This document shows positions 5,879-64,000 of a stretch of 64,000 bases of DNA, piece by piece. The translations under genes were made by a program, and so were the position numbers. Every line of letters begins with the position of its first letter. Position 1 is the stretch's first letter. A model generated the notes under the pieces. It did no database searches. It had not been told where the DNA came from and worked only from the letters and a program-made list of their open reading frames with translations. The DNA lies in the IMG/VR virus record IMGVR_UViG_3300034117_001582, positions 227,868 through 291,867 of that record; one strand, 5' to 3'.

Positions 5879-5898
5879 ATAATGATAAATATATGGGG

Positions 5899-5930
5899 AA
5901 ATAAAAAACCCCACTAGTTGGAATGGGGGG
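5899..5930 (-). terminator. Cassette terminator
   Basis: acccca..tggggt hairpin + T-tract. Confidence 0.75.
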
Positions 5931-21988: not shown

Positions 21989-22046
21989 AGTTATAAATAT
22001 CGCTTAATTATTTTGCGTCATCAATAGTTTATCGTATCTTTATGTT

Positions 22047-39650: not shown

Positions 39651-40232
39651 TTATTTTCTATCCATTCTTGATTTGTCGGCGGCCTTGTAGTGAAAACCGG
39701 TTTTATACTTATCATATCCACCTCTTTTAAAGAACGCAGAGTCTTTTAAAGTCACACCCAACAAAGAAACAATACCAGCAACAAGAGCGGCTCCACCACC
39801 AATAAACATCGCGGCCGGCACAATTCCTAAACCAGCTATCAAACTAGTATTTTGAACAATTTTATCTAAAATTCCTCTTAATTTCATTTCAGTTTCACTC
39901 ATTCCGTATTGTTTTTCAAAATCCTCATACATCATTTCGTCAACTTCTGAATAATTAGCATCTTCCTCTTCCATTTGTGATACCACATCCATCAACATGT
40001 CTTCTAATTCATCTTTACCTTTACGTTTCATTAAATCACTAAGGAATCTCATTTCAGATGGTGAAATAGTATGTTGTAGTTCTTCTTTAGCGGTTTCTAA
40101 ATCCATTTTAGAAAAATCCGATTCCCCTTCCATTTCTTGGGAGTCTGCCATCCATTGTTCTTCATCTTCTTTGATAATTCTTTTTACCAAATTAATAAGT
40201 TCGGATTCTGTTAGTCTTATAGTTCTTTTCAT
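39651..40232 (-). CDS. Leader-A protein, acidic with C-terminal hydrophobic hairpin
   Basis: MKRTIRLTESELINLVKRIIKE; LIAGLGIVPAAMFIGGGAALVAGIVSLLGV. Confidence 0.87.
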   Translation of the reverse strand: MKRTIRLTESELINLVKRIIKEDEEQWMADSQEMEGESDFSKMDLETAKEELQHTISPSEMRFLSDLMKRKGKDELEDMLMDVVSQMEEEDANYSEVDEMMYEDFEKQYGMSETEMKLRGILDKIVQNTSLIAGLGIVPAAMFIGGGAALVAGIVSLLGVTLKDSAFFKRGGYDKYKTGFHYKAADKSRMDRK

Positions 40233-46471: not shown

Positions 46472-46497
46472 ATTTATAAATATATTGAAGTTATGGT

Positions 46498-50037: not shown

Positions 50038-50270
50038 ATTAAAAATAAATAAATAAAGTTATTTACTCACTTGAAGAATCTTTTAAGAAACCCCCATATT
50101 CCATGGGCCGGTCGAGACGTACATAAATATAGAAGTACCACAAAACAATTAAAGGTAATTGCGTTATAGATGAATATTTATGGTGTTTTAATTATTATTT
50201 AGAATATATCTTTATCGAATACTATTTAAACCCAAAAACAATAACCCCAATCGAAGGTCAATTGGGATTA

Positions 50271-50963
50271 TTATAAAAAGTCAATTTCATTGGTTACTGG
50301 ATTCCAATCAATAATCCAAGGCTTGTGAGAATAAAGGTATTGTTCATTCAACACAGACGCATTGAAGTAGTGTGTGTATCCATCAAAGTAATGTCCGTGT
50401 CCACTATGGATGTGACCACAGATGTGAATCTTAGGTTTGATTTGTTTGATTTTCTCAGCAAGTAATTCACAACCCAAGTGAACATTGCGGTTACCTTCAA
50501 CATCATCCAATATTCCCCAAGCCGGTCCGTGAGTAATTAAGATATCAATTCCTTCAGGAATCATATCCCATACCGCTTTTAACTCCTCACCATTTTTTGG
50601 TAAGTTAAACGCCCAATTGTAGAACTCAGGTTGCCAAGGAGATCCCCAAATTTTAATCTCAGGTCCATCACCATCTTGAATGGTCATTAACTCATCTTGA
50701 ATATATTCAATAGTTTTGTAACCTGTCAAGATACCTTTTACTTTCTCAACATTGTTTTGGAATCCCCAATCGTGATTACCCGCAATAAATACTTTGTGAT
50801 CGTAGGTTACGATTTTGTCATACCAACCCGCAAACTGAGTGATCTCGTGTTCGTAACCCATAGAACTGATGTCACCTGCGTGTAACAACAAATCGCCACC
50901 AGGTAAATCGTGGTGTACGTGTTTGTGTTTTCCGTGAGTGTCTGATATGATAGTTAATTTCAT
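50271..50963 (-). CDS. Metallophosphoesterase (MPPED2/239FB-like)
   Basis: ISDTHG.H, LHAGD, IAGNHD, IWGSPWQP, THGP, CGHIH; TATATTTG 50968-75. Confidence 0.9.
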   Translation of the reverse strand: MKLTIISDTHGKHKHVHHDLPGGDLLLHAGDISSMGYEHEITQFAGWYDKIVTYDHKVFIAGNHDWGFQNNVEKVKGILTGYKTIEYIQDELMTIQDGDGPEIKIWGSPWQPEFYNWAFNLPKNGEELKAVWDMIPEGIDILITHGPAWGILDDVEGNRNVHLGCELLAEKIKQIKPKIHICGHIHSGHGHYFDGYTHYFNASVLNEQYLYSHKPWIIDWNPVTNEIDFL

Positions 50964-51037
50964 AATACAAATATAATCATTTTTTTAATTTTAATAAAAT
51001 ATATTTTAATAATTTGTATTTTAATTTGTAAAACATC

Positions 51038-51433
51038 TTAATTTATTTTAATCCATTTATTGTCGTGATTATATTTAAAAGACCCAATGTGTTCACGATT
51101 CCATTCTTTTGGGTCTATTAATGATAAGAAAACATTTCCTTTTTTACCATAATAAAGATGATATATTTTTCCAATCACAGGTTCAAAACTAAACTTTGCA
51201 TTATAAACCAAGTCATTCCACTTGTATTCGTCAATTAGTTTTTGATATTCATTCTTTAATTCCTCAACCTTATCTTGGAATTGTTGGTTAACGTGAATTA
51301 CTCTTGGTTGTTTCCAACTTTCTATATTAGGAACATGTATAGCAGGTGCCCCAATATTACTACCATAAGGTAATAATCCTGCGTTTTCCACATAATTATC
51401 AGGTTTTTTTGAATTAATAGTTTCCTCTTCCAC
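51038..51433 (-). CDS. DUF2452-family protein
   Basis: LPYG.N.GAP, FSFEPVIGKIYHLY, FLSLI.P.EW. Confidence 0.8.
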   Translation of the reverse strand: MEEETINSKKPDNYVENAGLLPYGSNIGAPAIHVPNIESWKQPRVIHVNQQFQDKVEELKNEYQKLIDEYKWNDLVYNAKFSFEPVIGKIYHLYYGKKGNVFLSLIDPKEWNREHIGSFKYNHDNKWIKIN

Positions 51434-51500
51434 AGTGAACCATAGCTTTTATTCTTTCTTGTTCTAACCAAGAAAGGTATTTAAATAATCTTTTCATGTC

Positions 51501-51734
51501 TTAACTTATTATTTTAATTTCACTTTCAGTTTCTATTACTACTCTTGCCCCACAACTTAATAACGGTTTCTCATCCCCACTACCACAATATATAATTCTA
51601 CTTGGTCCAAGTATTTCGACCTCATTACAATACGTGTTCTTTCTACCTTGTTTAATTGTTATTACCGGTAAGTCCGTATTCTTTGTTTTGTTTGACCTAA
51701 TATGGTGTTGGTTAACGTGGATTTTTGTTTTCAA
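51501..51734 (-). CDS. Conserved phage protein (IHVNQH.I..N...CGARV.IET)
   Basis: Probable TTG start at 51734. Confidence 0.75.
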   Translation of the reverse strand: MKTKIHVNQHHIRSNKTKNTDLPVITIKQGRKNTYCNEVEILGPSRIIYCGSGDEKPLLSCGARVVIETESEIKIIS

Positions 51735-52002
51735 AATGAATTGGGTTTTCACAATTTCCTTTATGTGAACCCCAAGTATTTTCTCCAAAACCAACTTTAA
51801 TGTATTCACAACCTCCATATGTAAATTCTGTTACATTTTTGAAACGGTCATTAGATTTCTGTCTTAACTCTATAGGTTTTTCTATTTGTTCAGATATTGT
51901 TTTATCACACGATGTTAACGATATAAGAACCATACCAAGTAGGAATCCAATTATCATCACAAATAATGGTCCAATATCTATTTCTTTTTTTTTCATATAC
52001 AA
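51712..52002 (-). CDS. Lipoprotein-like membrane protein
   Basis: Hydrophobic helix ending LTS-C. Confidence 0.7.
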   Translation of the reverse strand: MYMKKKEIDIGPLFVMIIGFLLGMVLISLTSCDKTISEQIEKPIELRQKSNDRFKNVTEFTYGGCEYIKVGFGENTWGSHKGNCENPIHFENKNPR

Positions 52003-52031
52003 AAATTAAATGATTTGTGTTCTAAAATCAA

Positions 52032-52484
52032 CTATGGTTTTGAATAAAATTTGATTTTGTTTTTGGCGTTTTCTATTAACCATTCATCAACATATGGAAT
52101 CTTTTTTAAGAAATCCAACTCATGTTGATAAGTTATTACTTCTTCAACGTTTGGTGCCAAGTTAAAGTTAGTTGTTAAAAAATATAAATGTAATGACTCG
52201 TGAACAAGGATTGCGGCTATATTGTATATATTACCGTTGTTCATCTCTTTTGTTGGAATTGTAATTATACTATCCGATTCTGTTGTTGAAAACCCTCCAT
52301 TCCAAAAAGCAACTACCTTACATGTTTCCATAATAAGGTAGTATTTTTCTATATCATATTTTTGTACAGTATCTAAAGCCTGTTCTACTTTACCTTTCCA
52401 CCCATCCCCAACATCAGTAATTCTGATTTGAGAGAAAGAGTATGAGGACAAAATTAACAATATCAAAAGTGTCCATATCTTCAC
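52032..52484 (-). CDS. Secreted HExxH metalloprotease-like protein
   Basis: Signal peptide; AAILVHESLH...EE. Confidence 0.7.
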   Translation of the reverse strand: MKIWTLLILLILSSYSFSQIRITDVGDGWKGKVEQALDTVQKYDIEKYYLIMETCKVVAFWNGGFSTTESDSIITIPTKEMNNGNIYNIAAILVHESLHLYFLTTNFNLAPNVEEVITYQHELDFLKKIPYVDEWLIENAKNKIKFYSKP

Positions 52485-52936
52485 GGCAATTTAGTTGCAG
52501 CCTCGTGTATTGCTTTTTTTAACGCTGACGATACCGTCATCTTTTCAAATGGAATTGACCCTTCTTGAACCTCAATCATTATCGCTCTAATCTCAGTGTC
52601 TGATTCACCAATACCTTGGTAACAATTACCTTTATAGTGAAGTTTAACTCCGACCTGAGTTATTGTGTTTGTTTTTTCTACACCAACAACTCTTATGGTT
52701 GTTTTAGGTAATCCAAAATAATACACCTCAACATCAATATCATCACCATTGTCAGATAAACAATACTTTTCAGATAACTCTTCTTCAACAATTTGTTTAA
52801 TACCAAAACGAATATCTCTATTACCCAGTTCTCTTAATTTTGCCGTATTATATATTGAATCAACATGAACACATTGTTGAGCCGTTGCGAGGTTACCAAG
52901 TAGTAACATACCAAAGAGTAAGATTAAATTCTTCAT
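52481..52936 (-). CDS. Secreted CsgG/TolB-N-like small protein
   Basis: Signal peptide; G.G.SDT; F...TV..ALKKA, similar to C-terminus of 58314..59054; start reassigned to 52936. Confidence 0.6.
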   Translation of the reverse strand: MKNLILLFGMLLLGNLATAQQCVHVDSIYNTAKLRELGNRDIRFGIKQIVEEELSEKYCLSDNGDDIDVEVYYFGLPKTTIRVVGVEKTNTITQVGVKLHYKGNCYQGIGESDTEIRAIMIEVQEGSIPFEKMTVSSALKKAIHEAATKLP

Positions 52937-52938
52937 AT

Positions 52939-53949
52939 TTAAAACCAATTTTTTGGATTCCATTTTGATTTTTCAGCATCTCTAGCAGCTCTATCTAACG
53001 CGTCTTGAGCCTCTCTTGCCTGTCTATTAATTTCATCTTGTGCCGCTCTTGCTTGTCTATCAAGTTCATCTTGTGCTGCTCTCGCTTGTCTATCAAGTTC
53101 TTGTTGTGCCTCTCTCGCCTTTCTATCTAATTCTTCCTGAGCAATTCTTGCCAATCTATCAGTTTCCTCTTTAGCAGCTTTCGCTTGTCTATCAAATTCT
53201 TCTTGAGCTTCTCTCGCCTTTCTTTCAGTTTCTTCTTGGGCTATTTTTGCAAGTCGTTCAGTTTCTCTTTGTGTTGCTTCAGATAATGCTTGTGCTTCTG
53301 CCGCCACACGTTCTGATTCTTCAGCCGCCAATCTAGCGTCTTCAGCAATTTGGTTTGTATCAACACTAACACTTAAATCAACATCAACACCAAGTAAAAC
53401 CGCCACTTCACCACTAACTCCAACAGTTGCAACTCCATCCACAAAGGTAGCTTCACCACCACCACCAATTCCAACTTGTTCTCCAACCGATACTCCTGCT
53501 CCAGCAGTTACTGAACCTTCTCTAAAATCGGCAGTTCCTTCACCATCAACACCTACTGATGTACCTGCAGATACACTTCCGTTTGCAACTACACCTTCAT
53601 CTCCCGCTCTTACTTCTAAACTTGCCTCATTTCCTGTTTTAGCATAAGCGTCTACAGAACCACCAACTCCAAATCCTTCAGCATTTGCTTGACCTTCTAC
53701 CGTCACATGAACTTCAGTTGTATCTGAGTAGTTTGCTTCTACATATACGTTATTACCGTCTAATCCACCTTCCACAGATGCCTCTGTTCCGGTTTTAGCA
53801 GACGCTTCAATACCAATTGAGGCATTTTCATCTCCGACTTCCACACCCGCAGATGCAGTGGTTGTATTGTCAATTGATGCTCCACCTGAGGTTTCATTTG
53901 AATGTGTTTCGGCGGTTTCGTTGTGTTTGATGTGTGCGTGTTTTTTCAT
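52939..53949 (-). CDS. G/A/V-rich beta-strand domain + 11-residue-repeat coiled coil
   Basis: Alternating xAxAxGxV strands; (RQAREAQEELD)n; 33-bp DNA repeats. Confidence 0.85.
   Translation of the reverse strand: MKKHAHIKHNETAETHSNETSGGASIDNTTTASAGVEVGDENASIGIEASAKTGTEASVEGGLDGNNVYVEANYSDTTEVHVTVEGQANAEGFGVGGSVDAYAKTGNEASLEVRAGDEGVVANGSVSAGTSVGVDGEGTADFREGSVTAGAGVSVGEQVGIGGGGEATFVDGVATVGVSGEVAVLLGVDVDLSVSVDTNQIAEDARLAAEESERVAAEAQALSEATQRETERLAKIAQEETERKAREAQEEFDRQAKAAKEETDRLARIAQEELDRKAREAQQELDRQARAAQDELDRQARAAQDEINRQAREAQDALDRAARDAEKSKWNPKNWF
52990..53240. repeat. Imperfect 33-bp tandem repeats in coding sequence
   Basis: ctctcgcttgtctatcaagttc variants repeated. Confidence 0.8.
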
Positions 53950-53967
53950 TTTTACTTAGTTTTTAAT

Positions 53968-54252
53968 TTATTTATCTTTTAATTCATTTATTGCATCCTC
54001 AACATACTTATCTCTTTGGTCTTGGAGATACGTAATTCTTTGTAAGAGTATTTCTTTATCTTCTTTGGCCGTTTTATCTATAAGTTGGTCCTTTTCTTCG
54101 TATTGTACTTGCCAAAATGAAACTCTTTCTTCCATCATACGATGTTGATAATAAATTACACCTAACATAAGTATAATAATAAAAGATTGTTCTTTAAGTT
54201 TAGATAAGAACGTATCTGCGAATCCTGAAATTGGGTTTGTGTTTCCTGACAT
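53968..54252 (-). CDS. Single-TM + coiled-coil protein
   Basis: FIIILMLGVIYY then heptads. Confidence 0.75.
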   Translation of the reverse strand: MSGNTNPISGFADTFLSKLKEQSFIIILMLGVIYYQHRMMEERVSFWQVQYEEKDQLIDKTAKEDKEILLQRITYLQDQRDKYVEDAINELKDK

Positions 54253-54279
54253 AACGTTTAGTTTTATAAATAAATAGTC

Positions 54280-54873
54280 TTAACTTTTAATAATGTATTT
54301 AGTAAAGTCAGTGGATAAAGGTTTTTCATTTTTGAAGTAATATTTCTCCATTTTATTACCATATTTTATTGTTTTAATATACCCATCAGGAACTGTTGCC
54401 CCTGTTGGTAAAACAATTGATTTTTTAGAAAATATACATCTGATTTCAACGACAACATTTTTACCTGTTTTTGCTAATTCCCTTTCTCTAACTTCTAATA
54501 ATCTCCAAGTCGTTCTATTTAAGTTTTCTTGTTGTAATGAACAATTTAGATAAGTGAACGTTTTAAATAATAAATCTTTTGTGCAATTAAAGTCAGCCGC
54601 TGGTGCCATATGACCTTTATCATATGAATTATTAAAATAATCTTTATCATCAGAGGTAAGTATTGAATCACAAGTATAGAAATCCATCCCTGTTCTTGGT
54701 GCCGATCCATTAGGACATTGTACCGTATACCGAATAAACTTTGGTTGTTGTAATTTCTCTGAATAAACAATCTCAAACATATCTGTTTTAATATAGATAG
54801 AATCTCTTAACGTCTTCTGACTGAATACGAATAATGGTAATGTTAATAATAGTGTTAATAATAATTTTTTCAT
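54280..54873 (-). CDS. Secreted DNA/RNA non-specific endonuclease (His-Me finger)
   Basis: Signal peptide; YDKGHMAPAAD, TF.YLN..LQ..NLNR..W..LE. Confidence 0.92.
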   Translation of the reverse strand: MKKLLLTLLLTLPLFVFSQKTLRDSIYIKTDMFEIVYSEKLQQPKFIRYTVQCPNGSAPRTGMDFYTCDSILTSDDKDYFNNSYDKGHMAPAADFNCTKDLLFKTFTYLNCSLQQENLNRTTWRLLEVRERELAKTGKNVVVEIRCIFSKKSIVLPTGATVPDGYIKTIKYGNKMEKYYFKNEKPLSTDFTKYIIKS

Positions 54874-54878
54874 ATCAG

Positions 54879-55751
54879 TTAAAGTTGGAATCTTGTACCT
54901 ATCATAAATAAAATAGGATTACTTTTTTTATACGTTGTAATTGTTTTATCTATTGTGTTGTTTAATCTAAAGTTTGTATTTAAAACAAATTTATTAGTAA
55001 TTTTCCAATTCATAGAAATTCCGTAATAAATGTCTAAGTTGAAATTTTCAAAATACCCAATATTTAAATCATCGCTTTTAAACACTTTATAAATATCTCC
55101 TGTGGTAAATATCTGTGGTGAAATATCAACGATTTTCGTCTTTATCGGGTAAGTATACATTAACATAACTCTAATTGTTAGTTGAGTTGATGGTGGGTTT
55201 ATTGGGTAAATATTCTCAACCCAATTACCACTTGAATCAACCACAAACTGACCTTCCCAAGGACCTTCCCACTCACCCCAAAATGTTTTTGATGTTATAA
55301 AATTGTAACCAAACTTTCCAAATTTTTTAGTGTTGATTACATCAATAAATGATACGGTTATATTTTTTTGGAAAACAAAATCACAAGACCCAATTGTTTG
55401 TAATGTAATTACCCTATTTTTTTTTGTTTTTGAAATCCCATATCCAATCCCATAATACTTCCATATTGGGTTTATTGATGTTATAAATGCGTGATTCCAT
55501 TTTTGAGTGTTTGATGTTATATTATAACTTAAATTAAGAGTTGTTGATAAACGATTATTAACATAACCTAAAGATATGTCAGATGAAGAAAGTATGTCTT
55601 TTGAATAATCAACGTAAGATTGGGTAGTCCCTAAATTATTCCATTTTGAGTTATAATCAAATAGTTCTTGTGGTGTTAATTTAATAGTATCTTGAGCTTG
55701 AAGTAAAAACCCCAAAAAAGACAAAATAAAAAGTAATGTTAGTTTTTTCAT
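54879..55751 (-). CDS. Outer-membrane beta-barrel-like protein
   Basis: Signal peptide; alternating aromatic strands; ends MIGTRFQL. Confidence 0.65.
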   Translation of the reverse strand: MKKLTLLFILSFLGFLLQAQDTIKLTPQELFDYNSKWNNLGTTQSYVDYSKDILSSSDISLGYVNNRLSTTLNLSYNITSNTQKWNHAFITSINPIWKYYGIGYGISKTKKNRVITLQTIGSCDFVFQKNITVSFIDVINTKKFGKFGYNFITSKTFWGEWEGPWEGQFVVDSSGNWVENIYPINPPSTQLTIRVMLMYTYPIKTKIVDISPQIFTTGDIYKVFKSDDLNIGYFENFNLDIYYGISMNWKITNKFVLNTNFRLNNTIDKTITTYKKSNPILFMIGTRFQL

Positions 55752-56758
55752 TAGTAATTTACTGTTGTTTTATATCCAGGAGCAATCAAGTAATAGTTTT
55801 GTGACCCCCCACTTACGGGTGAGTTTATTGTCATAGATGGCATACCAGGAATACTTATTCTTAGGTCTGTTGTGTTTGTTGTTAGTGTTGTATATTGTGC
55901 TGGTGTGAATAATTTAGATGGTGTCATTGTAACCCAATTTGTTAATGTGTTATACCTTCTTAAGTTAATATAATTTTGGTCAGCAATGTTTATTTTACCA
56001 TCGTAGTTCACATCATATCTATGGTAATGAATACTTTTAATGGCTGTCGTTCCCAAAACTAACTTTGATACCTCAACCATATCTGTTATTTGTAATGCGG
56101 TTACAGGTGTTGTGGCATCGTATTGTAAATACCACTCAACCGCAGGACTTGTTGGTTGTGAGAAACTATAATACCCCGACGCATTTGTATATGCCGTTTG
56201 ATGTAATACCCAAGAAGTGTATGTAACAATGTATTCAAATTCCAACACATACGGCAACGACATATTAGGTAAATCATTCCATCTTCCACCACCAACAAAT
56301 TGTATGTAATCCTCATTATTAGAGTTATTCGGTTCACCACCATTCCAATATGACCAAGAATATGGTTCTCCAGTTACCCATTGCCAAACACCTTCGGTAA
56401 CCTCATCGGTTAAACCAATCCACCCACTTGGCCATAATCCAAATAAAAAATTATTTTCAGCCAATGTAGTTGAGGTAACAAGATGTCCTCCCATATTAAT
56501 ACAGGCTTGTTTGGCCGCAGTCCAAGTCATTGACCCTGTTGATCTATAGTATGAATGTCCATTAAAATTATTTTGTGATGTAAACCCATTCATTACGGGT
56601 GTAGTTCTTTTATACAACTTAACAGGTACATTAACCGCACCCGTTCCATCCGCATTATAAATGTATCCCGAATATGTAAAGTTTTGAGTAAACCCTATAA
56701 ACGGAATAACAAATAACATTAACGTTATTATTGTCCTACTAACATTCTTGCTCCACAT
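55751..56758 (-). CDS. Secreted C-type lectin + dockerin-like protein
   Basis: TWTAAKQAC...GGHLVT, WIGLTD, W.W..GE, W..GEPNN..EDY, WND; DVNYDGKINIAD; start reassigned to 56758. Confidence 0.85.
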   Translation of the reverse strand: MWSKNVSRTIITLMLFVIPFIGFTQNFTYSGYIYNADGTGAVNVPVKLYKRTTPVMNGFTSQNNFNGHSYYRSTGSMTWTAAKQACINMGGHLVTSTTLAENNFLFGLWPSGWIGLTDEVTEGVWQWVTGEPYSWSYWNGGEPNNSNNEDYIQFVGGGRWNDLPNMSLPYVLEFEYIVTYTSWVLHQTAYTNASGYYSFSQPTSPAVEWYLQYDATTPVTALQITDMVEVSKLVLGTTAIKSIHYHRYDVNYDGKINIADQNYINLRRYNTLTNWVTMTPSKLFTPAQYTTLTTNTTDLRISIPGMPSMTINSPVSGGSQNYYLIAPGYKTTVNY

Positions 56759-58317
56759 GTTACCGTATAATTTAAAGCACTTGATTTCAAATCCCAAGCA
56801 CCACCTGCGTTTATGTTAAATTTAAACTTTTTTGTTATTTTAATATTTGTACCAATACTTGGTAACATTACATAAGGAGATTTCATTACCACATCATTAT
56901 AGTAACTCACATAAGGAGCATAAACAAATAGGTTCATTAATTTAATATCAAATCGTTTACCTATTTTCATATCATAAGTTGCCCCACCAATAACGGCAGT
57001 ACCTAAAAAAGATTCTCTATATACTTGACCATAAGATACGGTTGCCATATAAAGAAGTTTAAGTGATTTAGGTTTTTTAAATGTAAACATTTGACCTACC
57101 GCTATTGTTCCATATAATGATTTATTACCAAAAAACCCTACGGTCAGTGTACCTGAACCTATTATGATTGATTTAGACCTAATGAATGCATAAAATCCTG
57201 TTATGTTAGGACCTCTAAGTGCTGAGGTGTAATCAACTAAAACCCCAGAACTTCGTTTACCATCCCATCTCATTGCAGTATAACCACCCGTTAACTTTAA
57301 CCCCGACTTAACGTCATTGTTTCTAAAGTTAAACCCAATAAAATCTCCACTACCCACTATTGTTGGTTTACCACCTTCTTTAGATGTTGGTGTTGAGTTT
57401 ATTGTTGTGGTTGCACCTCCTGTTATATTTGTTTGTCCTCCTCCTTCTTCCGTTGTTGTTTGGCTTTCTTCCGTCTGATTATTTCCTGAACCAGACCCTG
57501 TACTCCCATTCCCACCGTTATTCCCAGTAGTCCCGACGCCGCTATTGTTACTATTACCACCATTTTCCGTTGTTGTTTGATTGTTTATTTGACCACCTAT
57601 CTGACCGCCTATCTGACCACCTACAGACGATTCAGACGACTGAGTTCCTGTTTCATTTGATCCACCTTCAGTTGTAGTTCCTCCTGTTTGTGTTGAATTT
57701 TGAGTTCCAACATTTTGATTAGTGGTTCCATTTCCTCCGTTTGTAGTTCCTTCATTTGATCCAGAAGTGGTTGTACCTCCTTGAGTAGAGTTACCTGTTC
57801 CATTCGTTTGATTTTGAGTATTATTGGTTGTGGAATTATTAGTATTTGTTGTATTACTTCCACTTCCATTTTGGGAATTATTCCCTTTTTTGTTTTTATT
57901 GCCAGACCCCCCATTACTTAAAGAACTAACAGCCCCTCCCAATATGTTGGTGGACCCACCGGCTAAATCAGATATTGACGATAATGAGTTTAGAATCCCA
58001 ATAACATTTAATGCGGTTCCTTGGGTTACATTTATTGTGGTACCTAAACCCACGATTTCAGAGCAAGGACTATTCGTACCATATTGTGAAAATATGTTAT
58101 TAGTCCAATTGTCAAATGTTCCGTTTGTAAAATCGTTTTGACTAAACGACCCGATTTCTCCGTAGTATGCAACGGTGACGTTTCCGTTGATAGGCACTAC
58201 TATTGTTTTTAGATTACCCGTACAAGGGTCTGTGTAACTATAATTGTAAGTTTGTGCATTCAGGTTTAAGAACCAAAACACACAAAAAAACAATAGTATA
58301 ATAACATTTAGTTTCAA
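56728..58317 (-). CDS. Secreted protein: Gly/Asn/Thr/Gln low-complexity linker + C-terminal beta-barrel-like domain
   Basis: Signal peptide; ~170-aa G/N/T/S/Q tract; amphipathic C-terminal strands. Confidence 0.75.
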   Translation of the reverse strand: MKLNVIILLFFCVFWFLNLNAQTYNYSYTDPCTGNLKTIVVPINGNVTVAYYGEIGSFSQNDFTNGTFDNWTNNIFSQYGTNSPCSEIVGLGTTINVTQGTALNVIGILNSLSSISDLAGGSTNILGGAVSSLSNGGSGNKNKKGNNSQNGSGSNTTNTNNSTTNNTQNQTNGTGNSTQGGTTTSGSNEGTTNGGNGTTNQNVGTQNSTQTGGTTTEGGSNETGTQSSESSVGGQIGGQIGGQINNQTTTENGGNSNNSGVGTTGNNGGNGSTGSGSGNNQTEESQTTTEEGGGQTNITGGATTTINSTPTSKEGGKPTIVGSGDFIGFNFRNNDVKSGLKLTGGYTAMRWDGKRSSGVLVDYTSALRGPNITGFYAFIRSKSIIIGSGTLTVGFFGNKSLYGTIAVGQMFTFKKPKSLKLLYMATVSYGQVYRESFLGTAVIGGATYDMKIGKRFDIKLMNLFVYAPYVSYYNDVVMKSPYVMLPSIGTNIKITKKFKFNINAGGAWDLKSSALNYTVTCGARMLVGQ

Positions 58318-59054
58318 TTTTTAAATACGCCTTTAGTAATAAGTCTACTAACGACTCTTGACGATGCCGTTTCCAATGCCTTCTTGGTAGTAATACCTAT
58401 CGTTGATTGATTGAATTTAACCTCGTCTGATATATCACCTAATAATGATGATGTTTTCACCGTACTTGCTTCACCAAGACCTGATCCTACAATCACTTGA
58501 CTTGTTTCAGCATCTACAAATTTAATTTGTAACCCTAAACGAGTTGTTTGTGTTGTTGTCTGTTGACCATTAACTTTTACAACCTCATCCTCAGATACAC
58601 TGAAATCGTAGACTTCAATATAAACAAAGTACTTCGCCAATATCACATTTCCTTTTACATCGATTTTATTAACTGAGATTCCTTTATCAGAAGCCTTGTC
58701 CTGAGCAATCATTCGTTGTTTGATGTCTTCCTTTTCTTCAGTAAATACAAATCTACCCGTATACTCCAAATACTCAATTACAATGTTTGTAACCCCCAAA
58801 CCAACTCGTTTGTCTTTAAGTTCAGGATATAGCTCATACAACTCCTCATTAATACCAATCTTTAATAATTGGATGGGTACTTGTATTGTATCAGTATAAT
58901 TTGCAACATCATTAATAGATTGTTTCTTTTCAAATTCAGCCTGATATTGTTCAGTCTTTACAGAACCAATACCCCCACTGGTTTGTGGGGGTTGGGCTTG
59001 TACTGTTTTACATCCAATCAGAAATAGTGATAATATGTAAAGTATTTTTCTCAT
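58314..59054 (-). CDS. CsgG-like (curli assembly/transport family) lipoprotein
   Basis: LIG-C lipobox; LG.TN...EYL..TGRF..TE; A.YFV...V.DF; LQ.KFVDAET.Q.I.GSG. Confidence 0.7.
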   Translation of the reverse strand: MRKILYILSLFLIGCKTVQAQPPQTSGGIGSVKTEQYQAEFEKKQSINDVANYTDTIQVPIQLLKIGINEELYELYPELKDKRVGLGVTNIVIEYLEYTGRFVFTEEKEDIKQRMIAQDKASDKGISVNKIDVKGNVILAKYFVYIEVYDFSVSEDEVVKVNGQQTTTQTTRLGLQIKFVDAETSQVIVGSGLGEASTVKTSSLLGDISDEVKFNQSTIGITTKKALETASSRVVSRLITKGVFKN

Positions 59055-59099
59055 AATGTGTAAAGTATTTTTCTAATAATATGTAAAGTGGATTTTTTA

Positions 59100-59381
59100 T
59101 TATCCCTCTACTTCTTCGTCTTTATCTTTGTTTTTACCAGCAAAGTATTTATCAACAGACGCAATACCAAATGAACCTAAAGTTATCCATAAAAACCCAT
59201 CATAGATAAATTGATTTATTGGCATTTCTTGTCCGTGTAATCCCGTCCATATATCAACACCAAGACAAATAACCATCATGATAAATGACCCAAAACCTAC
59301 TATCGATTTTTCATTAATGTCGTTATGATCCATAAACATTCTTACTAAGAATGATTTCTTTTTTGTTTTCTTTTCTACCAT
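59100..59381 (-). CDS. Two-TM membrane protein, holin-like
   Basis: Two TM helices, charged C-terminus. Confidence 0.55.
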   Translation of the reverse strand: MVEKKTKKKSFLVRMFMDHNDINEKSIVGFGSFIMMVICLGVDIWTGLHGQEMPINQFIYDGFLWITLGSFGIASVDKYFAGKNKDKDEEVEG

Positions 59382-59418
59382 TTTAATTTTAATTTTAATT
59401 GTTTATTTTAATTGTTTA

Positions 59419-59751
59419 TTACCAAGATTCTTCCTCTTTTTTAGGTTGAGGTTGAACCGGTTGGGGATTAGATGCGGGTTTCTCAATAACTCTTTCATGA
59501 ATTACTGTATTACCCCCATTGTTTTCAGTTTTTTGTTTATTTTCTTGGTTTTGTTCCACATTAATAGTGATTGGTGCTTGACCTCCACTTTGTTCTGTTT
59601 TAGTTTCTTCTTTTGGTTCTTCATGACTACCAAATAATGTAACACCTAACCATGTACCCCCACCAGCAATTACTGTTGTTAATGTACCAATAATTGTTTT
59701 TTTCAAACCTGACCATGTTCCGTCATTGGTCTCTTGTGCTTCTTCTGACAT
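59419..59751 (-). CDS. Single-TM protein with polar tail
   Basis: IIGTLTTVIAGGGTWLGVTLFG. Confidence 0.75.
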   Translation of the reverse strand: MSEEAQETNDGTWSGLKKTIIGTLTTVIAGGGTWLGVTLFGSHEEPKEETKTEQSGGQAPITINVEQNQENKQKTENNGGNTVIHERVIEKPASNPQPVQPQPKKEEESW

Positions 59752-59772
59752 TTTTTGTTTTTATTTATTTGT

Positions 59773-61683
59773 TTATTGTTTTACTATTCTTTCAAATGAT
59801 GGAACACCATTTTCTACAGTAAGTTTAACTATATATACACCAGGAGCTAATTGTCCTAAATCTTTAGTGTAGTTATAAACTCCGTTAGGAATTTGTGTAT
59901 CCAAAATTGTAACTAACTTTCTACCCACAATATCATAAATTGATAACGTAGCGTTTGTAGTTTCTTCAACTTTAAAAGTGATGTTAACCTCATCTTGATA
60001 TGGGTTAGGATAAACTTCCATGTTGTTACCATTTAGAATTTTTCCACCTTCCATCTTTAATACTTGAAGGATTCCATTTGTAGGAGTTAAAGTTAAATCT
60101 TTAGATAATGTATTTCCTGCAAATTTTCTTGTAGTATATAATGGACTTGCTTCCCATAAGTTTTGTGGTTGTAACGCCAAGAATTGTAATGTAACTACTT
60201 GGTCACCATCTTTTAATGTGTTCGTATTATTTGTTGGGTCAAATCCACCCCAATCAATTTCATTATCATTTGGGTTAACATATGTAATCCATTTCATAGC
60301 ACCTGCCGAAGAAATTATCCCTTTAAATTCTAATAATGTGTCATCATATATAAAACCAAATTGTAATGAACTTAACTCTACCCCGTTAGTATTAACTTTA
60401 ACGGGAAGTTCAACCAAGTTTCCAGCTTGTACTGAAATGTGTGGTACGTTTACCTCAATAGATTGTGTAGGGAAATCGTATTCAACTTTAGTGTCGATAA
60501 CATTATAGATTTGATTCTCTAAACCAGGTGCCGGTCCAACAACCACTTCAATAGGTGTAACACGAGCCATATGATAACCTGTACCATTTGCGTCACCCGG
60601 TACCATTACATAATAAACAACTGAATCAGGTTGACCCGGTAATATATTAAATGTAAAGTTGGTGACTCCACCAATTGTTGATGTGTAGTTAGTTGCCGAT
60701 CCGTTAATTGTTGTGTATTCTGATGATGTAAAGAATTTAACATCTTTAGTGTTGTTAGGCCACTGAGTAAATCTACCTGACACTCTACCAAACACACCCC
60801 ATACGTCAGATATTGTTGTACCATATGATCCATTAACATCTGCAGTATAGTAGTTAAATCCTGTCATAGTACCGTTGCCCAATACCCACTGATTGATTAA
60901 TTGAGCATCTGTTGATGAGATAACATTACCCACACCCATACTATCACCTTGAACCGCTAAACGAACATCCCAAAAAGTAGTATCCAATGGAACTGAAATT
61001 GCAAAATCTCCGTCGTTATCTGTTATATATGTAGAGTGTTGTGTCCAAGTATTACTACCTAATGGTTTCTTTTCTAAAGCTAAAGTTAAAGTTTTTGCTC
61101 CCGTACCGGTTACGTTTGTAAATGTTCCGTGATACGCAAAGTTTACAGGTGTAAACACACCACCATAGTTATGAACACTTAAAGTAGTATCCATACCATC
61201 TTGTTTTGCGGCATATGGTGTGAAAGTTTGAGCTCCTGTCCATGTTAAGTTACTTATGGATGCTAAGTTGTTGAAAGTAGCCGCAGGTGCATGAGTAAAT
61301 GTAATTAAGAATTTTTCACCATTTGGTACTGTGTACGCCGCACTTGGTCCTGTGTAACTTAAAGTAACGGTAATATAACCATTCACAGTATTTGTTATAT
61401 ACTGAAGGTCTAAGTTGGTTGATGATCCGATTAATGTTACGGCAGCATTTGTAAATGCAATATTATCGTAAAACACTCGGAATTGAACCCCCGCAAATTT
61501 TGTAAGGGTTGTATTTTGTAATGTGATTTTTGCTTGGGTCGTTCCCTGAGCAGTAGTTCCTACTTGATATTGTGATGCGATGATACCCCACAAACCATTA
61601 GATGGTGCTGCGGGTACCTGTGCAAAAACGAATAAAGGAGATAAAAGAACTAAGGTTAATAGTAATTTAAATAGAATAGACAT
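59773..61683 (-). CDS. T9SS type-A cargo: signal peptide + cohesin-like + dockerin-like + cohesin-like + CTD
   Basis: VYPNP..D.VNI.F...ATLSIYDIVGRKL...LAPGVYIVKL (Por CTD); VQAGNLVELPVKV...SSLQFGFIYDD..L; ADVNGSYGTTISD. Confidence 0.88.
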   Translation of the reverse strand: MSILFKLLLTLVLLSPLFVFAQVPAAPSNGLWGIIASQYQVGTTAQGTTQAKITLQNTTLTKFAGVQFRVFYDNIAFTNAAVTLIGSSTNLDLQYITNTVNGYITVTLSYTGPSAAYTVPNGEKFLITFTHAPAATFNNLASISNLTWTGAQTFTPYAAKQDGMDTTLSVHNYGGVFTPVNFAYHGTFTNVTGTGAKTLTLALEKKPLGSNTWTQHSTYITDNDGDFAISVPLDTTFWDVRLAVQGDSMGVGNVISSTDAQLINQWVLGNGTMTGFNYYTADVNGSYGTTISDVWGVFGRVSGRFTQWPNNTKDVKFFTSSEYTTINGSATNYTSTIGGVTNFTFNILPGQPDSVVYYVMVPGDANGTGYHMARVTPIEVVVGPAPGLENQIYNVIDTKVEYDFPTQSIEVNVPHISVQAGNLVELPVKVNTNGVELSSLQFGFIYDDTLLEFKGIISSAGAMKWITYVNPNDNEIDWGGFDPTNNTNTLKDGDQVVTLQFLALQPQNLWEASPLYTTRKFAGNTLSKDLTLTPTNGILQVLKMEGGKILNGNNMEVYPNPYQDEVNITFKVEETTNATLSIYDIVGRKLVTILDTQIPNGVYNYTKDLGQLAPGVYIVKLTVENGVPSFERIVKQ

Positions 61684-61758
61684 TTTTTTATTTTTTAGGT
61701 TTAATTGATATAAATAAATATATCTTAAAACCCAAACTGAATAAAAAAATTCAATTTT

Positions 61759-62067
61759 TTATTTACTTTTGCTATCTACCCATTCCCAACCCAAAAATAG
61801 TTTCATACAGTTTCTATGTAACCAATTTGGTTTAGTCTCTAAATGTATACAAAATCGTTTTCCATTACCCATACAATAGCTTCCAACTGATTTTGGAATT
61901 TTTAATCCTTGCGATGCGGCAACAAATGGTTTTTCAGAATTTGCAACCACGTCGGTTAATACATTTTCTACATTTTTTGTTTTAGTTTTGTAATACTTTT
62001 TTTTTGGTTTTTTTTCAATTTCAGGTTTCCCTTTAGTAATTGTTTCTTTTAATATTTCTTTTTCCAT
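61759..62067 (-). CDS. Hypothetical basic protein
   Basis: 102-aa ORF. Confidence 0.65.
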   Translation of the reverse strand: MEKEILKETITKGKPEIEKKPKKKYYKTKTKNVENVLTDVVANSEKPFVAASQGLKIPKSVGSYCMGNGKRFCIHLETKPNWLHRNCMKLFLGWEWVDSKSK

Positions 62068-62089
62068 AATCTTATTATAATCATTATTA

Positions 62090-62329
62090 TTAATAATGTA
62101 AATGTTCTAATTGATCCTCATTAAAGATATGGAGTAGTCCATACTCATCCATCTCACCCACTACTCGGACATTACCATCTACGGTTTTGAATACCGATAC
62201 GATTGTACATGGGAACTTATATCCTTTAACTTTTACTGCTTTGTCTCCTACTTGGAATTTTGTTTTGTTTACTTGGGGGAAATCCCCGTCTGATAACACA
62301 GGGTCATTCCAATTGTTTTGTTCATTCAT
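62090..62329 (-). CDS. Hypothetical SH3-like small protein
   Basis: FQVGDKAVKVKGYKFPCTIVSVF. Confidence 0.7.
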   Translation of the reverse strand: MNEQNNWNDPVLSDGDFPQVNKTKFQVGDKAVKVKGYKFPCTIVSVFKTVDGNVRVVGEMDEYGLLHIFNEDQLEHLHY

Positions 62330-62331
62330 AA

Positions 62332-62565
62332 TTATATTTTTTCGTAAGTCATTTCAAAAATGTCAGGTTTACAAGGATAAAACTCGCCCATAACTCCTTT
62401 GATTATGTAGTCACCAATACTAGCAGTCATAGATCCCTCTAAAGTTTGAATTCTTAACTCTTGATTAGTGATATAAGACATGTTACAAAAATCAAAAATC
62501 TCTAATTTGTTATCTCCTGTCCATTGGATTGCGTCAATCTCTACCGGTTTCTTTCTATATTTCAT
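62332..62565 (-). CDS. Conserved phage protein (YRKKPVEIDAIQW...TLEG.M.A..GDYIIKG..GEFYPCKPDIF..TY)
   Basis: Widely recurring phage motif. Confidence 0.85.
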   Translation of the reverse strand: MKYRKKPVEIDAIQWTGDNKLEIFDFCNMSYITNQELRIQTLEGSMTASIGDYIIKGVMGEFYPCKPDIFEMTYEKI

Positions 62566-62572
62566 AATTTTA

Positions 62573-63724
62573 TTAATTTGATAATGGTGCCTTTATTGGT
62601 GGATGTGATTGATAATCTTTTAATGTAAAATCACCAACAACATACGATTCAATACTTGGTCTTGTTCCTGTGTAAGTTGGGAACTGATTTAGTGTTGGTA
62701 ATTCAAATGGTTCTCTTGTATGTGTTGGTGTAGTTTTTTTATATAATTCTTCTGTTATTAAAACATTATCCATTTCAAGACCAGTATTTTTTATTACCCA
62801 TTGAATTTTTTCTTCCCATGTCATTTGTCTACCAATCTGTTCTTTTGCTTGTTCAATGTGATTTAAATATAAATGTGTATCACCCAAATTACCAATCAAT
62901 TCATCAGGAACCATATTAACTTCTTTTGATAAGATTTCAAGTAGTAGTCCATAAGAAGCAATATTGAATGGGATTCCCAAAAATAAATCCGCAGATCTTT
63001 GGTTCCACATTAAAGAGATTGATCTGGTTGGAATGTTTGCTTCATCTAAATCTTTATTGGTAATCTTTTCTAAAAATCTTTCAACTTTCTTACCTTGCAT
63101 AAACAAATTTACTCTTTCACTTATACTCAACTCTCTTGTATAAACTTGAAATCCATAATGACAAGGTGGAAGAACCATTTGATCCAATTCACCCACATTC
63201 CAAGCATTAACCATTAATCGTCTTGAGTCTGGGTTTGTTTTGAGGTCGTTGATTAGGTTTTGGATTTGGTCTATTTGATAAGTATCAATAGTTTTTTCAC
63301 CTTTGTATTGTTGAAATTTAGTCCAATTACGCCATTGCTTACCGTAGATTTGCCCCATATCAAACATTGAATCGTGAAAAGAATGATTACCATCTTTTAC
63401 TTTCTGTTTAACCTCTTCTATTGTATATGGTTCTGAACAAGTAGTTTTGTAATTTTTTTCCCAATCACCGTCCCATATTTTACAATTATTTTCCCATAAA
63501 AACCTAATATCTGAATCACCACGAAGGAACCACAATAATTCTGTTGTAATTGTTTTGAATGACATTTTCTTTGTTGTAAGTAATGGGAATCCCTCACTCA
63601 TTTTATGACGGATCTGTCTACCAAACACTGAAAGAGTCCCAGTACCAGTACGATCCGATTTTGTAACTCCATTTTCAAGAATGTCCTGTAATAAATCTGT
63701 GTATTGTTTATCTAAGTTATTCAT
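62573..63724 (-). CDS. thyA: Thymidylate synthase
   Basis: DRTGTGT, FPLLTTKK, ELLWFLRG, SRR, LPPCH, NQRSADLFLGIPFNIASY, GDTHLY.NH. Confidence 0.97.
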   Translation of the reverse strand: MNNLDKQYTDLLQDILENGVTKSDRTGTGTLSVFGRQIRHKMSEGFPLLTTKKMSFKTITTELLWFLRGDSDIRFLWENNCKIWDGDWEKNYKTTCSEPYTIEEVKQKVKDGNHSFHDSMFDMGQIYGKQWRNWTKFQQYKGEKTIDTYQIDQIQNLINDLKTNPDSRRLMVNAWNVGELDQMVLPPCHYGFQVYTRELSISERVNLFMQGKKVERFLEKITNKDLDEANIPTRSISLMWNQRSADLFLGIPFNIASYGLLLEILSKEVNMVPDELIGNLGDTHLYLNHIEQAKEQIGRQMTWEEKIQWVIKNTGLEMDNVLITEELYKKTTPTHTREPFELPTLNQFPTYTGTRPSIESYVVGDFTLKDYQSHPPIKAPLSN

Positions 63725-64000
63725 TATTTCTCACCTATAAACTTAAGTGCCGATGTGCTTCCGGCCATGTTGAAGGTAAAAACTTCAGATGAGCAAGTTA
63801 TGTCATTTACCCTAATTTTTAATATACTACATAGTTTAAAGTCGTTAAGTATAGTACTTTCCATTAAGTTATTAACTATCCATATAATTGTTCTATCTTC
63901 AGAAACTTCCATAGGTTCAGAGTATTTCACATAAGAACCATTAACTAAAAAAGACAAGTCTACCGTTGGGTATTCATCACAAGTATATCCACCCTGAAGA
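63724..64000 (-). CDS. 3' part of a hypothetical protein (starts beyond window)
   Basis: Frame stays open to the window edge (LQGGYTCDEYPTVDLSFLVNG...). Confidence 0.7.
   Translation of the reverse strand, partial: LQGGYTCDEYPTVDLSFLVNGSYVKYSEPMEVSEDRTIIWIVNNLMESTILNDFKLCSILKIRVNDITCSSEVFTFNMAGSTSALKFIGEK

Follow-up and report, generated by a model that had tools for sequence, protein, structure and literature searches.

A conserved, phage-encoded probable envelope module with predicted cohesin, dockerin and lectin domains

The 64,000-nt stretch of DNA analyzed here (the window) spans positions 227,868 to 291,867 of IMG/VR virus record IMGVR_UViG_3300034117_001582, which comes from a large phage of Flavobacterium-like bacteria. 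Near one end of the window lies a contiguous minus-strand gene cluster (52032-61683), in which seven genes, designated A to G, form a widely conserved and probably late-expressed operon. A first-pass annotation described the cluster from the sequence alone as an outer-envelope machine; that observation is confirmed, with all of the ORFs present on the minus strand at its coordinates, although one of the two proposed barrels has only weak support. Eight of the encoded proteins carry N-terminal signal-like peptides ending in A/S/T-Q, as read from the sequences rather than from a predictor.

Gene A (59773..61683) encodes a 636-aa scaffoldin-like protein that consists of a signal peptide, a first cohesin domain (about residues 25-180), a beta-sandwich (181-245), a dockerin-like module (246-310), a second cohesin domain (409-505+), and a type-A T9SS C-terminal sorting domain (557-636). 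The sorting domain matches Pfam Por_Secre_tail (E 1.6e-12) and TIGR04183 (E 1.3e-13), both above cutoff, and Pfam Cohesin matches residues 409-505 with 29.4 bits against a cutoff of 24.1. The N-terminal domain also has a cohesin fold; its AF2 model has pLDDT mostly above 85, and Foldseek matches it to cohesins with target-normalised TM up to 0.66 and to CipA Coh-X-Doc, the best structural match, at E 1e-8. The dockerin-like motif at 60805-60843 corresponds to residues 281-293 (ADVNGSYGTTISD) and lies in a module that matches the ScaB dockerin (4uyp_B) at E 4.5e-4 in a family profile search; however, Dockerin_1 scores below the Pfam cutoff in the window's own proteins, the first calcium loop is degenerate, and the dockerin region folds with pLDDT below 50. 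Among 21 relatives of A, the sorting domain, which is under purifying selection, is found in all 21, Cohesin in 19, and Dockerin_1 in 13.

Gene E (55751..56797; the likely start is the ATG at 56758) encodes a 348-aa protein with a signal peptide, a C-type lectin domain containing EPN and WND motifs, and a dockerin-containing C-terminal module. The lectin domain matches Lectin_C (E 1.2e-12) and C-type lectin domains in the PDB (E 8e-23). The sequence DVNYDGKINIAD (55979-56014) supplies a canonical dockerin calcium loop, but the first calcium loop is degenerate, as in A, and Dockerin_1 scores only E 0.0027. Residues 212-363 of A are homologous to residues 195-341 of E, so the dockerin module is shared between the two proteins. 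The lectin gene has interchangeable heads on this constant module: of 35 relatives, 26 have Lectin_C and 10 have Laminin_G_3 (a ConA-like lectin), and a canonical DxNxDGxIxxxD loop lies 70-90 residues from the C-terminus whatever the head.

Gene C (58314..59054) encodes a 246-aa lipoprotein (lipobox LIGC), the most conserved protein of the module. No CsgG Pfam hit was obtained with the protein itself, but 17 of 36 relatives hit CsgG, the family profile hits E. coli CsgG at E 3e-4, and the top Foldseek matches are CsgG (E 6e-9, TM 0.5-0.56); C has a CsgG fold and is homologous to the CsgG family. The protein resembles the E. coli curli channel (4UV3, 6L7A) in size, in having a lipobox, in the long beta-hairpins of its model, and in conservation of the "YP" of the constriction loop. 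That C forms a pore is nevertheless doubtful: of the three constriction residues only Y51 is kept, with N55 and F56 missing; its hairpin is polar and highly conserved, unlike a lipid-facing strand; and about 8 of 54 distinct relatives lack the lipobox Cys. There are no curli subunits. Gene F (52481..52963) encodes a secreted 160-aa truncated paralog of C (CsgG/LpoB/LptE-type alpha/beta fold), the homology being supported by hhalign (97.3%, E 2e-11).

Gene D (56728..58317) encodes a 529-aa protein with a signal peptide, a small N-terminal domain with two invariant Cys, about 200 aa of S/T/N/G/Q-rich low complexity, and a C-terminal region of about 210 aa that resembles autotransporter and KdgM-type outer-membrane barrels (TM 0.73-0.77) and would have about 12 strands. 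Gene B (59419..59751) encodes a 110-aa single-pass membrane protein with a conserved N-terminus, a low-complexity charged tail, and a conserved C-terminal Trp; it has no family hit and always lies between A and C. Gene G (52032..52484) encodes a secreted 150-aa protein with an invariant HExxH and weak zincin hits, making it a zincin-like metallopeptidase candidate.

Several other genes of the cluster are sporadic among the 86 loci compared. These include bb290 (54879..55751; 3 of 86 loci), a secreted 290-aa protein whose reading as a second barrel rests only on a weak hhalign match to the end of D; a secreted non-specific endonuclease of the EndoG/Serratia family (54280..54873; 29 of 86 loci) with a DKGH active-site motif (Endonuclease_NS, E 1e-18); s94 (53968..54252; 9 of 86 loci), a 94-aa membrane plus coiled-coil protein; and cc336 (52939..53949; 4 of 86 loci), a 336-aa protein with no signal peptide, G/V/E/A-rich repeats, and a coiled coil, which is a homolog of gp188 of the isolated Flavobacterium phage immuto, encoded just after the holin. 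The 93-aa membrane protein s93 (59100..59381) has a homolog that is the first gene of the lysis cassette in other phages (immuto gp192; the gene before the GH19 endolysin in L008-L010, where L-numbers are labels for individual loci). Peripheral to the module, downstream of G, is d96 (51712..52002; 16 of 86 loci), a small predicted lipoprotein (LTSC).

A late-promoter-like motif, TATTTATA on the coding strand, lies at 61709..61716 on the minus strand, 25 nt upstream of the start of A, and a second copy lies at 54265..54272 on the same strand, 12 nt upstream of s94. In immuto the same motif sits 10-30 nt upstream of the terminase, portal, sheath, tube, hub, and tape-measure genes, the lectin gene, and the first lysis-cassette gene. 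The exact motif is upstream of A in 15 of 84 loci, against a background of 0.8% per 60 nt. There is no terminator inside the module; the first strong terminator-like hairpin downstream (17-pair stem followed by a T run) lies at 50238..50274 on the minus strand.

The gene order A-B-C-D(-E-F-G) recurs in 86 fetched loci, including immuto, and at least 573 IMG/VR stretches encode a relative of C. In immuto and in locus L094, the scaffoldin is split into an adaptor (Coh1-X-Doc) and an anchor (Coh2-CTD) encoded by separate genes, each with its own signal peptide. E is absent from the most divergent locus, L092, so the lectin is not part of the invariant core (A, B, C, and D).

Host contamination or mis-assembly had been named in the first-pass annotation as one outcome that would refute its reading, and this possibility is effectively refuted. 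GC content is slightly higher in parts of the cluster (0.37 against about 0.30), but an identical sequence was assembled in a second sample and runs past the window's end, the module is present in immuto, gene orientation is continuous, and the phage promoter motif is present. A search of 185,579 species genomes gave only 5 hits, to MAG contigs, of which the four with enough flanking sequence show phage-type neighbors.

An alternative is that the cluster is a collection of independent envelope-targeted accessory genes that happen to sit in one variable region and form no joint machine. The sporadic distribution of bb290, cc336, s94, and the nuclease is in line with this view, as is the rest of the window, which is full of unrelated small genes of unknown function. 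It is considered unlikely because the order A-B-C-D is kept in 86 loci down to 27-33% identity of A and D, coding regions overlap, and the dockerin module is shared between A and E; in the comparison across loci a promoter motif was recorded only before A, although the window also has the copy before s94 and immuto has one before its lectin gene.

The favored but tentative explanation is that this is a phage-encoded cell-envelope module, probably transcribed late together with virion and lysis genes, that appears built to place a glycan-binding complex on the surface of the infected Bacteroidota cell. In this view, A is exported by Sec and carried across the outer membrane by the host T9SS through its type-A C-terminal domain, to be released or attached at the surface; the host of immuto is a Flavobacterium, a group that has a T9SS. 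With two cohesins and one dockerin-like module, A could bind copies of itself and the dockerin module of E, which would supply an exchangeable lectin head, here a C-type lectin with the mannose-type EPN/WND site and in other phages ConA-like heads. B, C, D, and F (a membrane protein, a CsgG-fold lipoprotein, a barrel with a long disordered stalk, and a small CsgG paralog) are always co-encoded and are inferred to form the outer-membrane passage or anchor for the components that have only a Sec signal; this is the weakest step, and how E, F, G, and the nuclease, which have no T9SS domain, would reach the surface is unknown. The likely biological effect is the sticking of infected cells, or their debris, to surface glycans around the time of lysis, which could mean capturing neighboring hosts or masking receptors on debris. 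The domain identities, folds, conservation, gene order, and promoter motif are established by the analysis, whereas binding, export route, timing, and role are inferred; there are no data on cohesin-dockerin binding, surface exposure, T9SS dependence, or expression.

The interpretation in the first-pass annotation, that the phage uses the host T9SS to build a lectin-tipped surface complex, is plausible and partly supported but unproven. The cluster is phage-borne and conserved, the scaffoldin-like protein has the sorting domain, and the cohesin and dockerin modules are distributed as in an anchoring scaffoldin plus a dockerin-tagged lectin; the adaptor/anchor split fits modular docking. Of the roles suggested there (superinfection exclusion, aggregation or adhesion of infected cells, or grazer interaction), the late-type promoter motif and the linkage to the lysis cassette point to a role at or after lysis, which fits adhesion or aggregation, or masking of debris, better than early superinfection exclusion.

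The same assembled complex might instead serve in receptor masking, coating the infected cell's own surface glycans or T9SS-dependent surface receptors and thereby blocking superinfecting phages or stopping progeny from being lost on debris; the periplasmic or secreted nuclease would add a barrier to incoming DNA. The heads are lectins of two unrelated folds that are swapped between lineages, as receptor-related proteins often are, the nuclease has a signal peptide, phage T9SS cargo has been proposed to act in superinfection or competition (PMC7468147), and late timing fits protection of progeny. This alternative is thought unlikely, since classical superinfection exclusion genes are expressed early and the nuclease is present in a minority of loci; there are no data on which glycans are bound.

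Linkage to the lysis cassette fits a lysis role equally well. A GH19 endolysin lies within a few kb in 58 of 86 loci, the holin is directly upstream of A in L008-L010, L047, L051, and L053-L055, and the divergent loci L092 and L094 place the core right after the endolysin. The invariant core might therefore be a lysis accessory that breaches or destabilizes the Bacteroidota outer membrane, as the functional equivalent of spanins, with B as the inner-membrane partner and C as the outer-membrane lipoprotein partner, or as a CsgG-type pore that times lysis; a role in lysis regulation has been proposed for phage CsgG in Melnitz (PMC9004378). The window's homologs of immuto gp192 and gp188, which flank that phage's endolysin and holin, are in line with this possibility. 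In relatives the B gene overlaps the start of C, as in overlapped spanin pairs, and no other spanin candidate lies between the holin and A in L008-L010; the arrangement of an inner-membrane protein gene overlapping an outer-membrane lipoprotein gene, next to the holin and endolysin in many relatives, is shared with two-component spanins (lambda Rz/Rz1). This explanation is considered doubtful because C (about 230 aa mature, with a globular CsgG fold) is far larger than known o-spanins, B has a low-complexity tail rather than a coiled coil, and a lysis role does not explain a T9SS-exported scaffoldin with cohesins or exchangeable lectin heads; moreover, in the window's own lineage no endolysin or holin homolog lies within the 64 kb.

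The first-pass annotation knew of no described phage system with this combination, a claim that is only partly right. Phage-encoded T9SS cargo is published for "Cryophage" (Bellas et al. 2020, PMC7468147), a phage of a Bacteroidota host that encodes proteins with type-A T9SS sorting domains, presumed to hijack the host system; there the cargo are variable enzymes and a PA14 protein in metagenomic islands, whereas here it is a highly conserved scaffoldin inside a fixed operon with outer-membrane proteins. Phage csgG/csgF "curli" operons are published for pelagimyophages and methylophage Melnitz (PMC7029224, PMC9004378), large aquatic myoviruses that likewise carry a CsgG-fold lipoprotein in a small operon with unknown partners and no CsgA or CsgB; their function is unknown, with proposals including uptake, sibling capture, and control of lysis. 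The top BFVD structural hit of C is a phage CsgG, but tblastn at E <= 1e-3 against the phage collection found only immuto records, so no link to pelagiphage CsgG is detectable that way; no CsgF was detected by Pfam or NCBIfam, and the partners here are a T9SS scaffoldin, a barrel protein, a truncated paralog, and a lectin. No report of the combination, or of the cohesin-dockerin logic, was found.

Cellulosome-type assemblies (anchoring and adaptor scaffoldins, the X-Doc dyads of Clostridia, and non-cellulosomal cohesin/dockerin modules) share with this module the cohesin domains, a dockerin with an EF-hand-type calcium loop and two helices preceded by a beta-sandwich as in X-Doc, variable functional heads on a constant dockerin, and, in some lineages, an adaptor/anchor split. 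The module differs in being encoded by a phage of a Gram-negative host, in having a T9SS C-terminal domain as the anchor rather than an SLH domain or a sortase signal, in carrying lectins rather than glycoside hydrolases as cargo, and in its degenerate first dockerin repeat. C and F also share their fold with PelC and LptE of the lipoprotein-plus-barrel export pairs PelC-PelB and LptE-LptD, and they too are encoded next to an outer-membrane barrel (D); the structural scores (TM 0.24-0.39, Foldseek ranks 18-49 for C) are much lower than for CsgG, the barrel of D is small, and the operon contains no polysaccharide or LPS genes.

The window is AT-rich (about 30% G+C), carries nearly all of its genes on the minus strand, and contains no tRNAs. 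Its only relative among deposited phages is Flavobacterium phage immuto, a 160-kb T4-like myovirus from the Baltic Sea; only about 15 window ORFs have immuto homologs, and the cluster under study is the best-conserved block. Within the thymidylate synthase gene (62573-63724) a 149-bp patch at 63127-63275 is 95% identical at the DNA level to immuto thyA, although the two proteins, both unusually long (383 and 423 aa), are only about 53% identical overall, which suggests a local gene-conversion patch or a strongly constrained segment. Host contamination or mis-assembly had been named in the first-pass annotation as a ground against its reading of the cluster; the window is the last 64 kb of a 291,867-bp IMG/VR viral contig (L011, 100% identity), and a second contig from another sample (L012) is 100% identical over 50317-64000 and runs past the window's end, so either origin is very unlikely.

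The elements listed in the first-pass annotation are present at the coordinates assigned to them, and its observation holds, with the exception that the reading of the 290-aa protein (bb290) as a barrel was not confirmed; a single-sequence PDB search with bb290 gave nothing useful. Family-model searches had been proposed as the check on the domains. PHROGs, applied to the ten main cluster proteins, gave only the nuclease, and NCBIfam gave only the T9SS domain; the Pfam and structural results are considered protein by protein.

The scaffoldin-like protein A (59773-61683) ends in a type-A T9SS sorting domain, which scores 48 bits against a cutoff of 27 for PF18962 (E 1.6e-12) and 50.7 against 23 for TIGR04183 (E 1.3e-13); the domain is present in 21 of 21 diverse relatives, with invariant PNP, G and Y positions. 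The N-terminus of A is hydrophobic and ends in FAQ, as expected of a Sec signal peptide; signal peptides in the cluster were read by eye, without a predictor. Neither T9SS-dependent secretion nor cleavage of the C-terminal domain was measured, and the only support for the former is that the host of the related phage is a Flavobacterium. Residues 409-505 of A match the Pfam cohesin model (PF00963) at 29.4 bits against a cutoff of 24.1, and 19 of the 21 relatives hit (best E 2.7e-12). No sequence model hits the N-terminal domain, but in an AF2 model of residues 20-405 the first 160 residues fold confidently into a beta-sandwich (pLDDT mostly above 85), for which the best PDB matches in Foldseek are cohesins (target-normalised TM of 0.51-0.66) and the C. 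thermocellum CipA cohesin-X-dockerin construct (E 1e-8). Binding of these cohesins to a dockerin was neither modelled as a multimer nor assayed. The dockerin-like motif picked out in the first-pass annotation at 60805-60843 lies in a 66-residue module that, in a family profile search, matches the ScaB dockerin 4uyp_B at E 4.5e-4.

The lectin E (55751-56797) matches the C-type lectin model (PF00059) at 48.9 bits against 22.6 (E 1.2e-12) and C-type lectin domains in the PDB at E 8e-23. The calcium and sugar site motifs EPN (residue 155) and WND (residue 173) are present and are conserved in the lectin-headed relatives; the conserved disulfide pairs of the domain are not, since the mature protein has only one Cys. 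Neither E nor A reaches the Pfam cutoff for type I dockerins (PF00404): E scores 18.3 bits against 22.9 and A has no hit, although 8 of 35 relatives of E and 13 of 21 relatives of A hit Dockerin_1 at E <= 0.01-0.05. The second of the two EF-hand-like calcium loops is canonical in E (DVNYDGKINIAD, at 55979-56014) and near-canonical in A, but the first is degenerate in both (13 residues, lacking N3 and D5), and the two helices are predicted only at low confidence, so that the paired-loop architecture of a dockerin is neither confirmed nor ruled out.

Residues 212-363 of A and residues 195-341 of E are homologous and share a module made of the end of a beta-sandwich plus the dockerin, reminiscent of the X-Doc dyad. 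E itself is modular, ranging from 332 to 903 aa, with heads that are C-type lectin (26 of 35), ConA-like Laminin_G_3 (10 of 35), Ig_7 or GEVED; the calcium loop lies 70-90 residues from the C-terminus and is kept in nearly all. Two unrelated lectin folds on one constant connector argue that glycan binding is the selected function. In immuto (locus L001, 11598-13422) and in the related locus L094 (5920-7750) the scaffoldin is encoded by two adjacent genes, each with its own signal peptide, rather than by a frameshifted pseudogene; one encodes Coh1-X-Doc (gp014 in immuto) and the other Coh2 plus the T9SS domain (gp015). This adaptor/anchor split is what a docking-based assembly predicts.

The lipoprotein C (58314-59054) has no CsgG/HfaB (PF03783) hit by itself, and a single-sequence PDB search gave nothing useful; its homology to the family is transitive, in that 17 of 36 relatives hit Pfam CsgG and the family profile finds E. 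coli CsgG at E 3e-4. The AF2 model (pLDDT 78.7) has the CsgG fold, with CsgG as its top 17 Foldseek PDB matches (E 6e-9 to 6e-8) and CsgG clusters in the Atlas at TM 0.57-0.65. The lipobox is LIGC at residues 12-15, but about 8 of 54 distinct relatives have a plain signal peptide instead. Of the CsgG constriction residues Y51, N55 and F56, only the Tyr (with the following Pro) is kept, N55 aligning to Lys and F56 to a gap. The strands of the model are 17-18 residues long, compatible with protruding hairpins, whereas the distal hairpin is polar (EDE, K, Q/T-rich) and nearly invariant, which suggests a protein contact rather than lipid exposure; the oligomer was not modelled, and these features do not settle whether C has membrane-spanning hairpins and forms a nonameric pore. 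A PelC- or LptE-like role as a periplasmic partner of the barrel of D, represented among the lower-ranked structural hits, is therefore a live alternative. No Pfam, NCBIfam or PHROG hit to the curli partners CsgA, B, E or F was found in any neighbour. A distant bacterial relative of C (P0182; 30% identity), in chromosome contigs L096-L098, sits in an operon with a Peptidase_C14 (caspase)/PEGA protein and two unannotated proteins, a context unrelated to curli that gave no functional lead. The secreted protein F (52481-52963) is a shortened paralog of C (hhalign 97.3%, E 2e-11), as also indicated by an Atlas search; a profile search of F against the PDB gave nothing significant.

Protein D (56728-58317) ends in about 210 residues that resemble 12-strand barrels. 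In the Atlas the structural similarity to autotransporter barrels is TM 0.73-0.77, and similar to KdgM, DUF481 and Gcw_chp; there is no Pfam hit, and a profile search gave no significant PDB sequence hit, so that a type Va autotransporter, with an N-terminal passenger and a C-terminal 12-strand barrel, is neither confirmed nor ruled out. The N-terminal domain of D shows no relation to A by hhalign. D was also considered as a PorG/SprF-like outer-membrane protein disulfide-tethered to the GldK track through a conserved Cys in a periplasmic C-terminal tail (PMC12635249), which was rejected because the Cys near its C-terminus is replaced by M, L or T in many relatives and lies in a strand-like pattern. 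The nuclease is a DNA/RNA non-specific endonuclease (PF01223, 68.3 bits against 23; phrog_14168) with a signal peptide and a DKGH active-site motif read in the sequence. The protein G has an invariant HExxH and weak hits to zincin families, but a profile search against the PDB gave nothing significant.

C has 5,581 relatives (protein clusters) at E <= 0.001 in the large protein collection, most of the listed ones 76-95% identical, and at least 573 matching stretches in IMG/VR viral contigs encode it; the module is thus abundant and sits in large and jumbo phages, with some contigs of 150-290 kb. The first-pass annotation had proposed to compare synteny in related phages and in Bacteroidota chromosomes. 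In 86 fetched loci the order A-B-C-D is invariant and E, F and G usually follow, while the nuclease (29 loci), the membrane proteins s93 (30) and s94 (9), the coiled-coil protein cc336 (4) and bb290 (3) are sporadic inserts. A scan of 185,579 species genomes returned five loci, all from MAG contigs, and the four with enough flanking sequence show the same phage-type neighbours; as far as these searches reach, the module is phage-specific. Coding regions overlap or abut and there is no terminator inside the module, the first strong one being at 50274-50238. An interpretation as independent accessory genes is, like contamination, poorly supported. Directly downstream of the module a small predicted lipoprotein, d96 (51712-52002; LTSC, with three further Cys), is conserved in 16 of 86 loci, followed by a DUF2452 protein and a metallophosphoesterase that co-travel with the module in 19 and 29 loci. 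The pair d96/d105 was considered as overlapped spanins and rejected because d105 has no membrane segment.

The motif TATTTATA on the coding (minus) strand occurs at about 26 sites in the window between 365 and 61716 (for example 851-858, 4269-4276, 21992-21999 and 46475-46482) and lies 3-25 nt upstream of about 17 gene starts, including A (61709-61716) and the 94-aa gene s94 (54265-54272), often just after a terminator-like hairpin with a T run. In immuto the same motif precedes the terminase, portal, sheath, tube, hub, tape-measure and tail-spike genes, the lectin gene gp013 that heads the module there, and the first lysis-cassette gene. It is enriched upstream of A and essentially absent upstream of B, C, D, F and G. 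It is probably the late promoter of this phage group, an inference that rests on one annotated relative; a sigma-70 scan found no more promoter-like sites than in shuffled sequence.

A GH19 endolysin lies within a few kb of the module in 58 of 86 loci, although the loci are related to each other and such counts are not independent events, and in several lineages the holin directly precedes A. The window's cluster has also absorbed homologs of immuto gp192 and gp188, which flank that phage's endolysin and holin; however, a search with the proteins of L008, a related locus, found no endolysin or holin of the window's own in the 64 kb, and ORFs around 34-40 kb are not lysis genes. Gene linkage and the overlap of the B and C genes support a role of the core in lysis or outer-membrane disruption, which does not explain the scaffoldin and the lectins. 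The adjacency and overlap expected of a two-component spanin are found in many loci, but the size and fold of C and the low-complexity tail of B do not fit a small outer-membrane lipoprotein and an inner-membrane protein with a periplasmic coiled coil.

In the tentatively favored model, A would cross the inner membrane by Sec and the outer membrane by the host T9SS; its cohesins offer docking sites for its own dockerin module and for that of E, which would result in a surface mesh carrying lectin heads, formed late, together with lysis genes. The analysis itself supports the family assignments and their conserved combination in phages, whereas docking, export, timing and function are inferences, made without expression or localisation data, and function is unproven. 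The first-pass interpretation, that the phage uses the host T9SS to build a lectin-tipped surface complex, is thus supported only in part. The unexplained step is how proteins with only a Sec signal (E, the adaptor in split lineages, the nuclease, F and G) reach the surface; these could pass through a conduit made by C, F and D, be exported as a complex with A, or assemble only after lysis. A role in binding glycans of neighboring cells or of debris around lysis is favored, and receptor masking is a variant of this model. A more far-reaching possibility, which is considered unlikely, is that the phage brings its own two-route display system, in which C, its mini-paralog F and the stalked barrel D would form a phage-encoded outer-membrane conduit for the Sec-only proteins (the lectin, the adaptor scaffoldin and the nuclease), which would then dock by cohesin-dockerin pairing onto a T9SS-anchored scaffoldin; late in infection the cell would become a lectin-armed particle that captures neighboring host cells for the progeny, with lectin heads swapped between phage lineages to match host glycans.

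Phage-encoded T9SS cargo has been reported for 'Cryophage' (PMC7468147), phage csgG/csgF operons of unknown function have been reported in pelagimyophages and Melnitz (PMC7029224, PMC9004378), and the immuto GenBank record already labels gp013 as a lectin protein and gp015 as a cohesin-domain protein. Literature searches found no description of phage cohesin-dockerin systems or of this operon; the parts belong to known families, and what is new is their conserved combination in phages. If the model is right, cohesin-dockerin assembly, to our knowledge described so far mainly from bacterial cellulosomes, is used by viruses to remodel the surface of a Gram-negative host; this would also give a testable function to the csgG genes that have puzzled marine phage genomics, and would show phages exploiting the Bacteroidota-specific T9SS in a conserved, structured way. 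Given the abundance of the module, a late lectin display could matter for aggregation and infection dynamics of Bacteroidota in natural waters, and an isolated phage-host pair (immuto and Flavobacterium sp. LMO8) makes the question accessible to direct study.

Elsewhere in the window, at least ten otherwise unrelated proteins encoded on the minus strand (85-351, 925-1179, 2359-2793, 3290-3727, 3808-4254, 5519-5914, 5935-6309, 11112-11429, 24855-26213 and 39651-40232) begin with the same leader of about 25 residues (consensus M-[AK]-[RK]-[IV]-I-R-L-T-E-[SR]-D-L-x-R-I-V-[KR]-R-[IV]-I-x-E), which may be a shared targeting sequence or propeptide, comparable to the capsid-targeting sequences of T4 internal proteins; several of these genes have the TATTTATA motif. 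The only sizeable plus-strand gene (36140-36739) has no family hit, but in the related locus L014 an 88%-identical copy sits just upstream of the scaffoldin gene, so it seems to move between positions. Two pairs of paralogous genes of unknown function, 8237-9358 with 11853-12920 and 1383-1820 with 1869-2279, are 45% and 51% identical, respectively.
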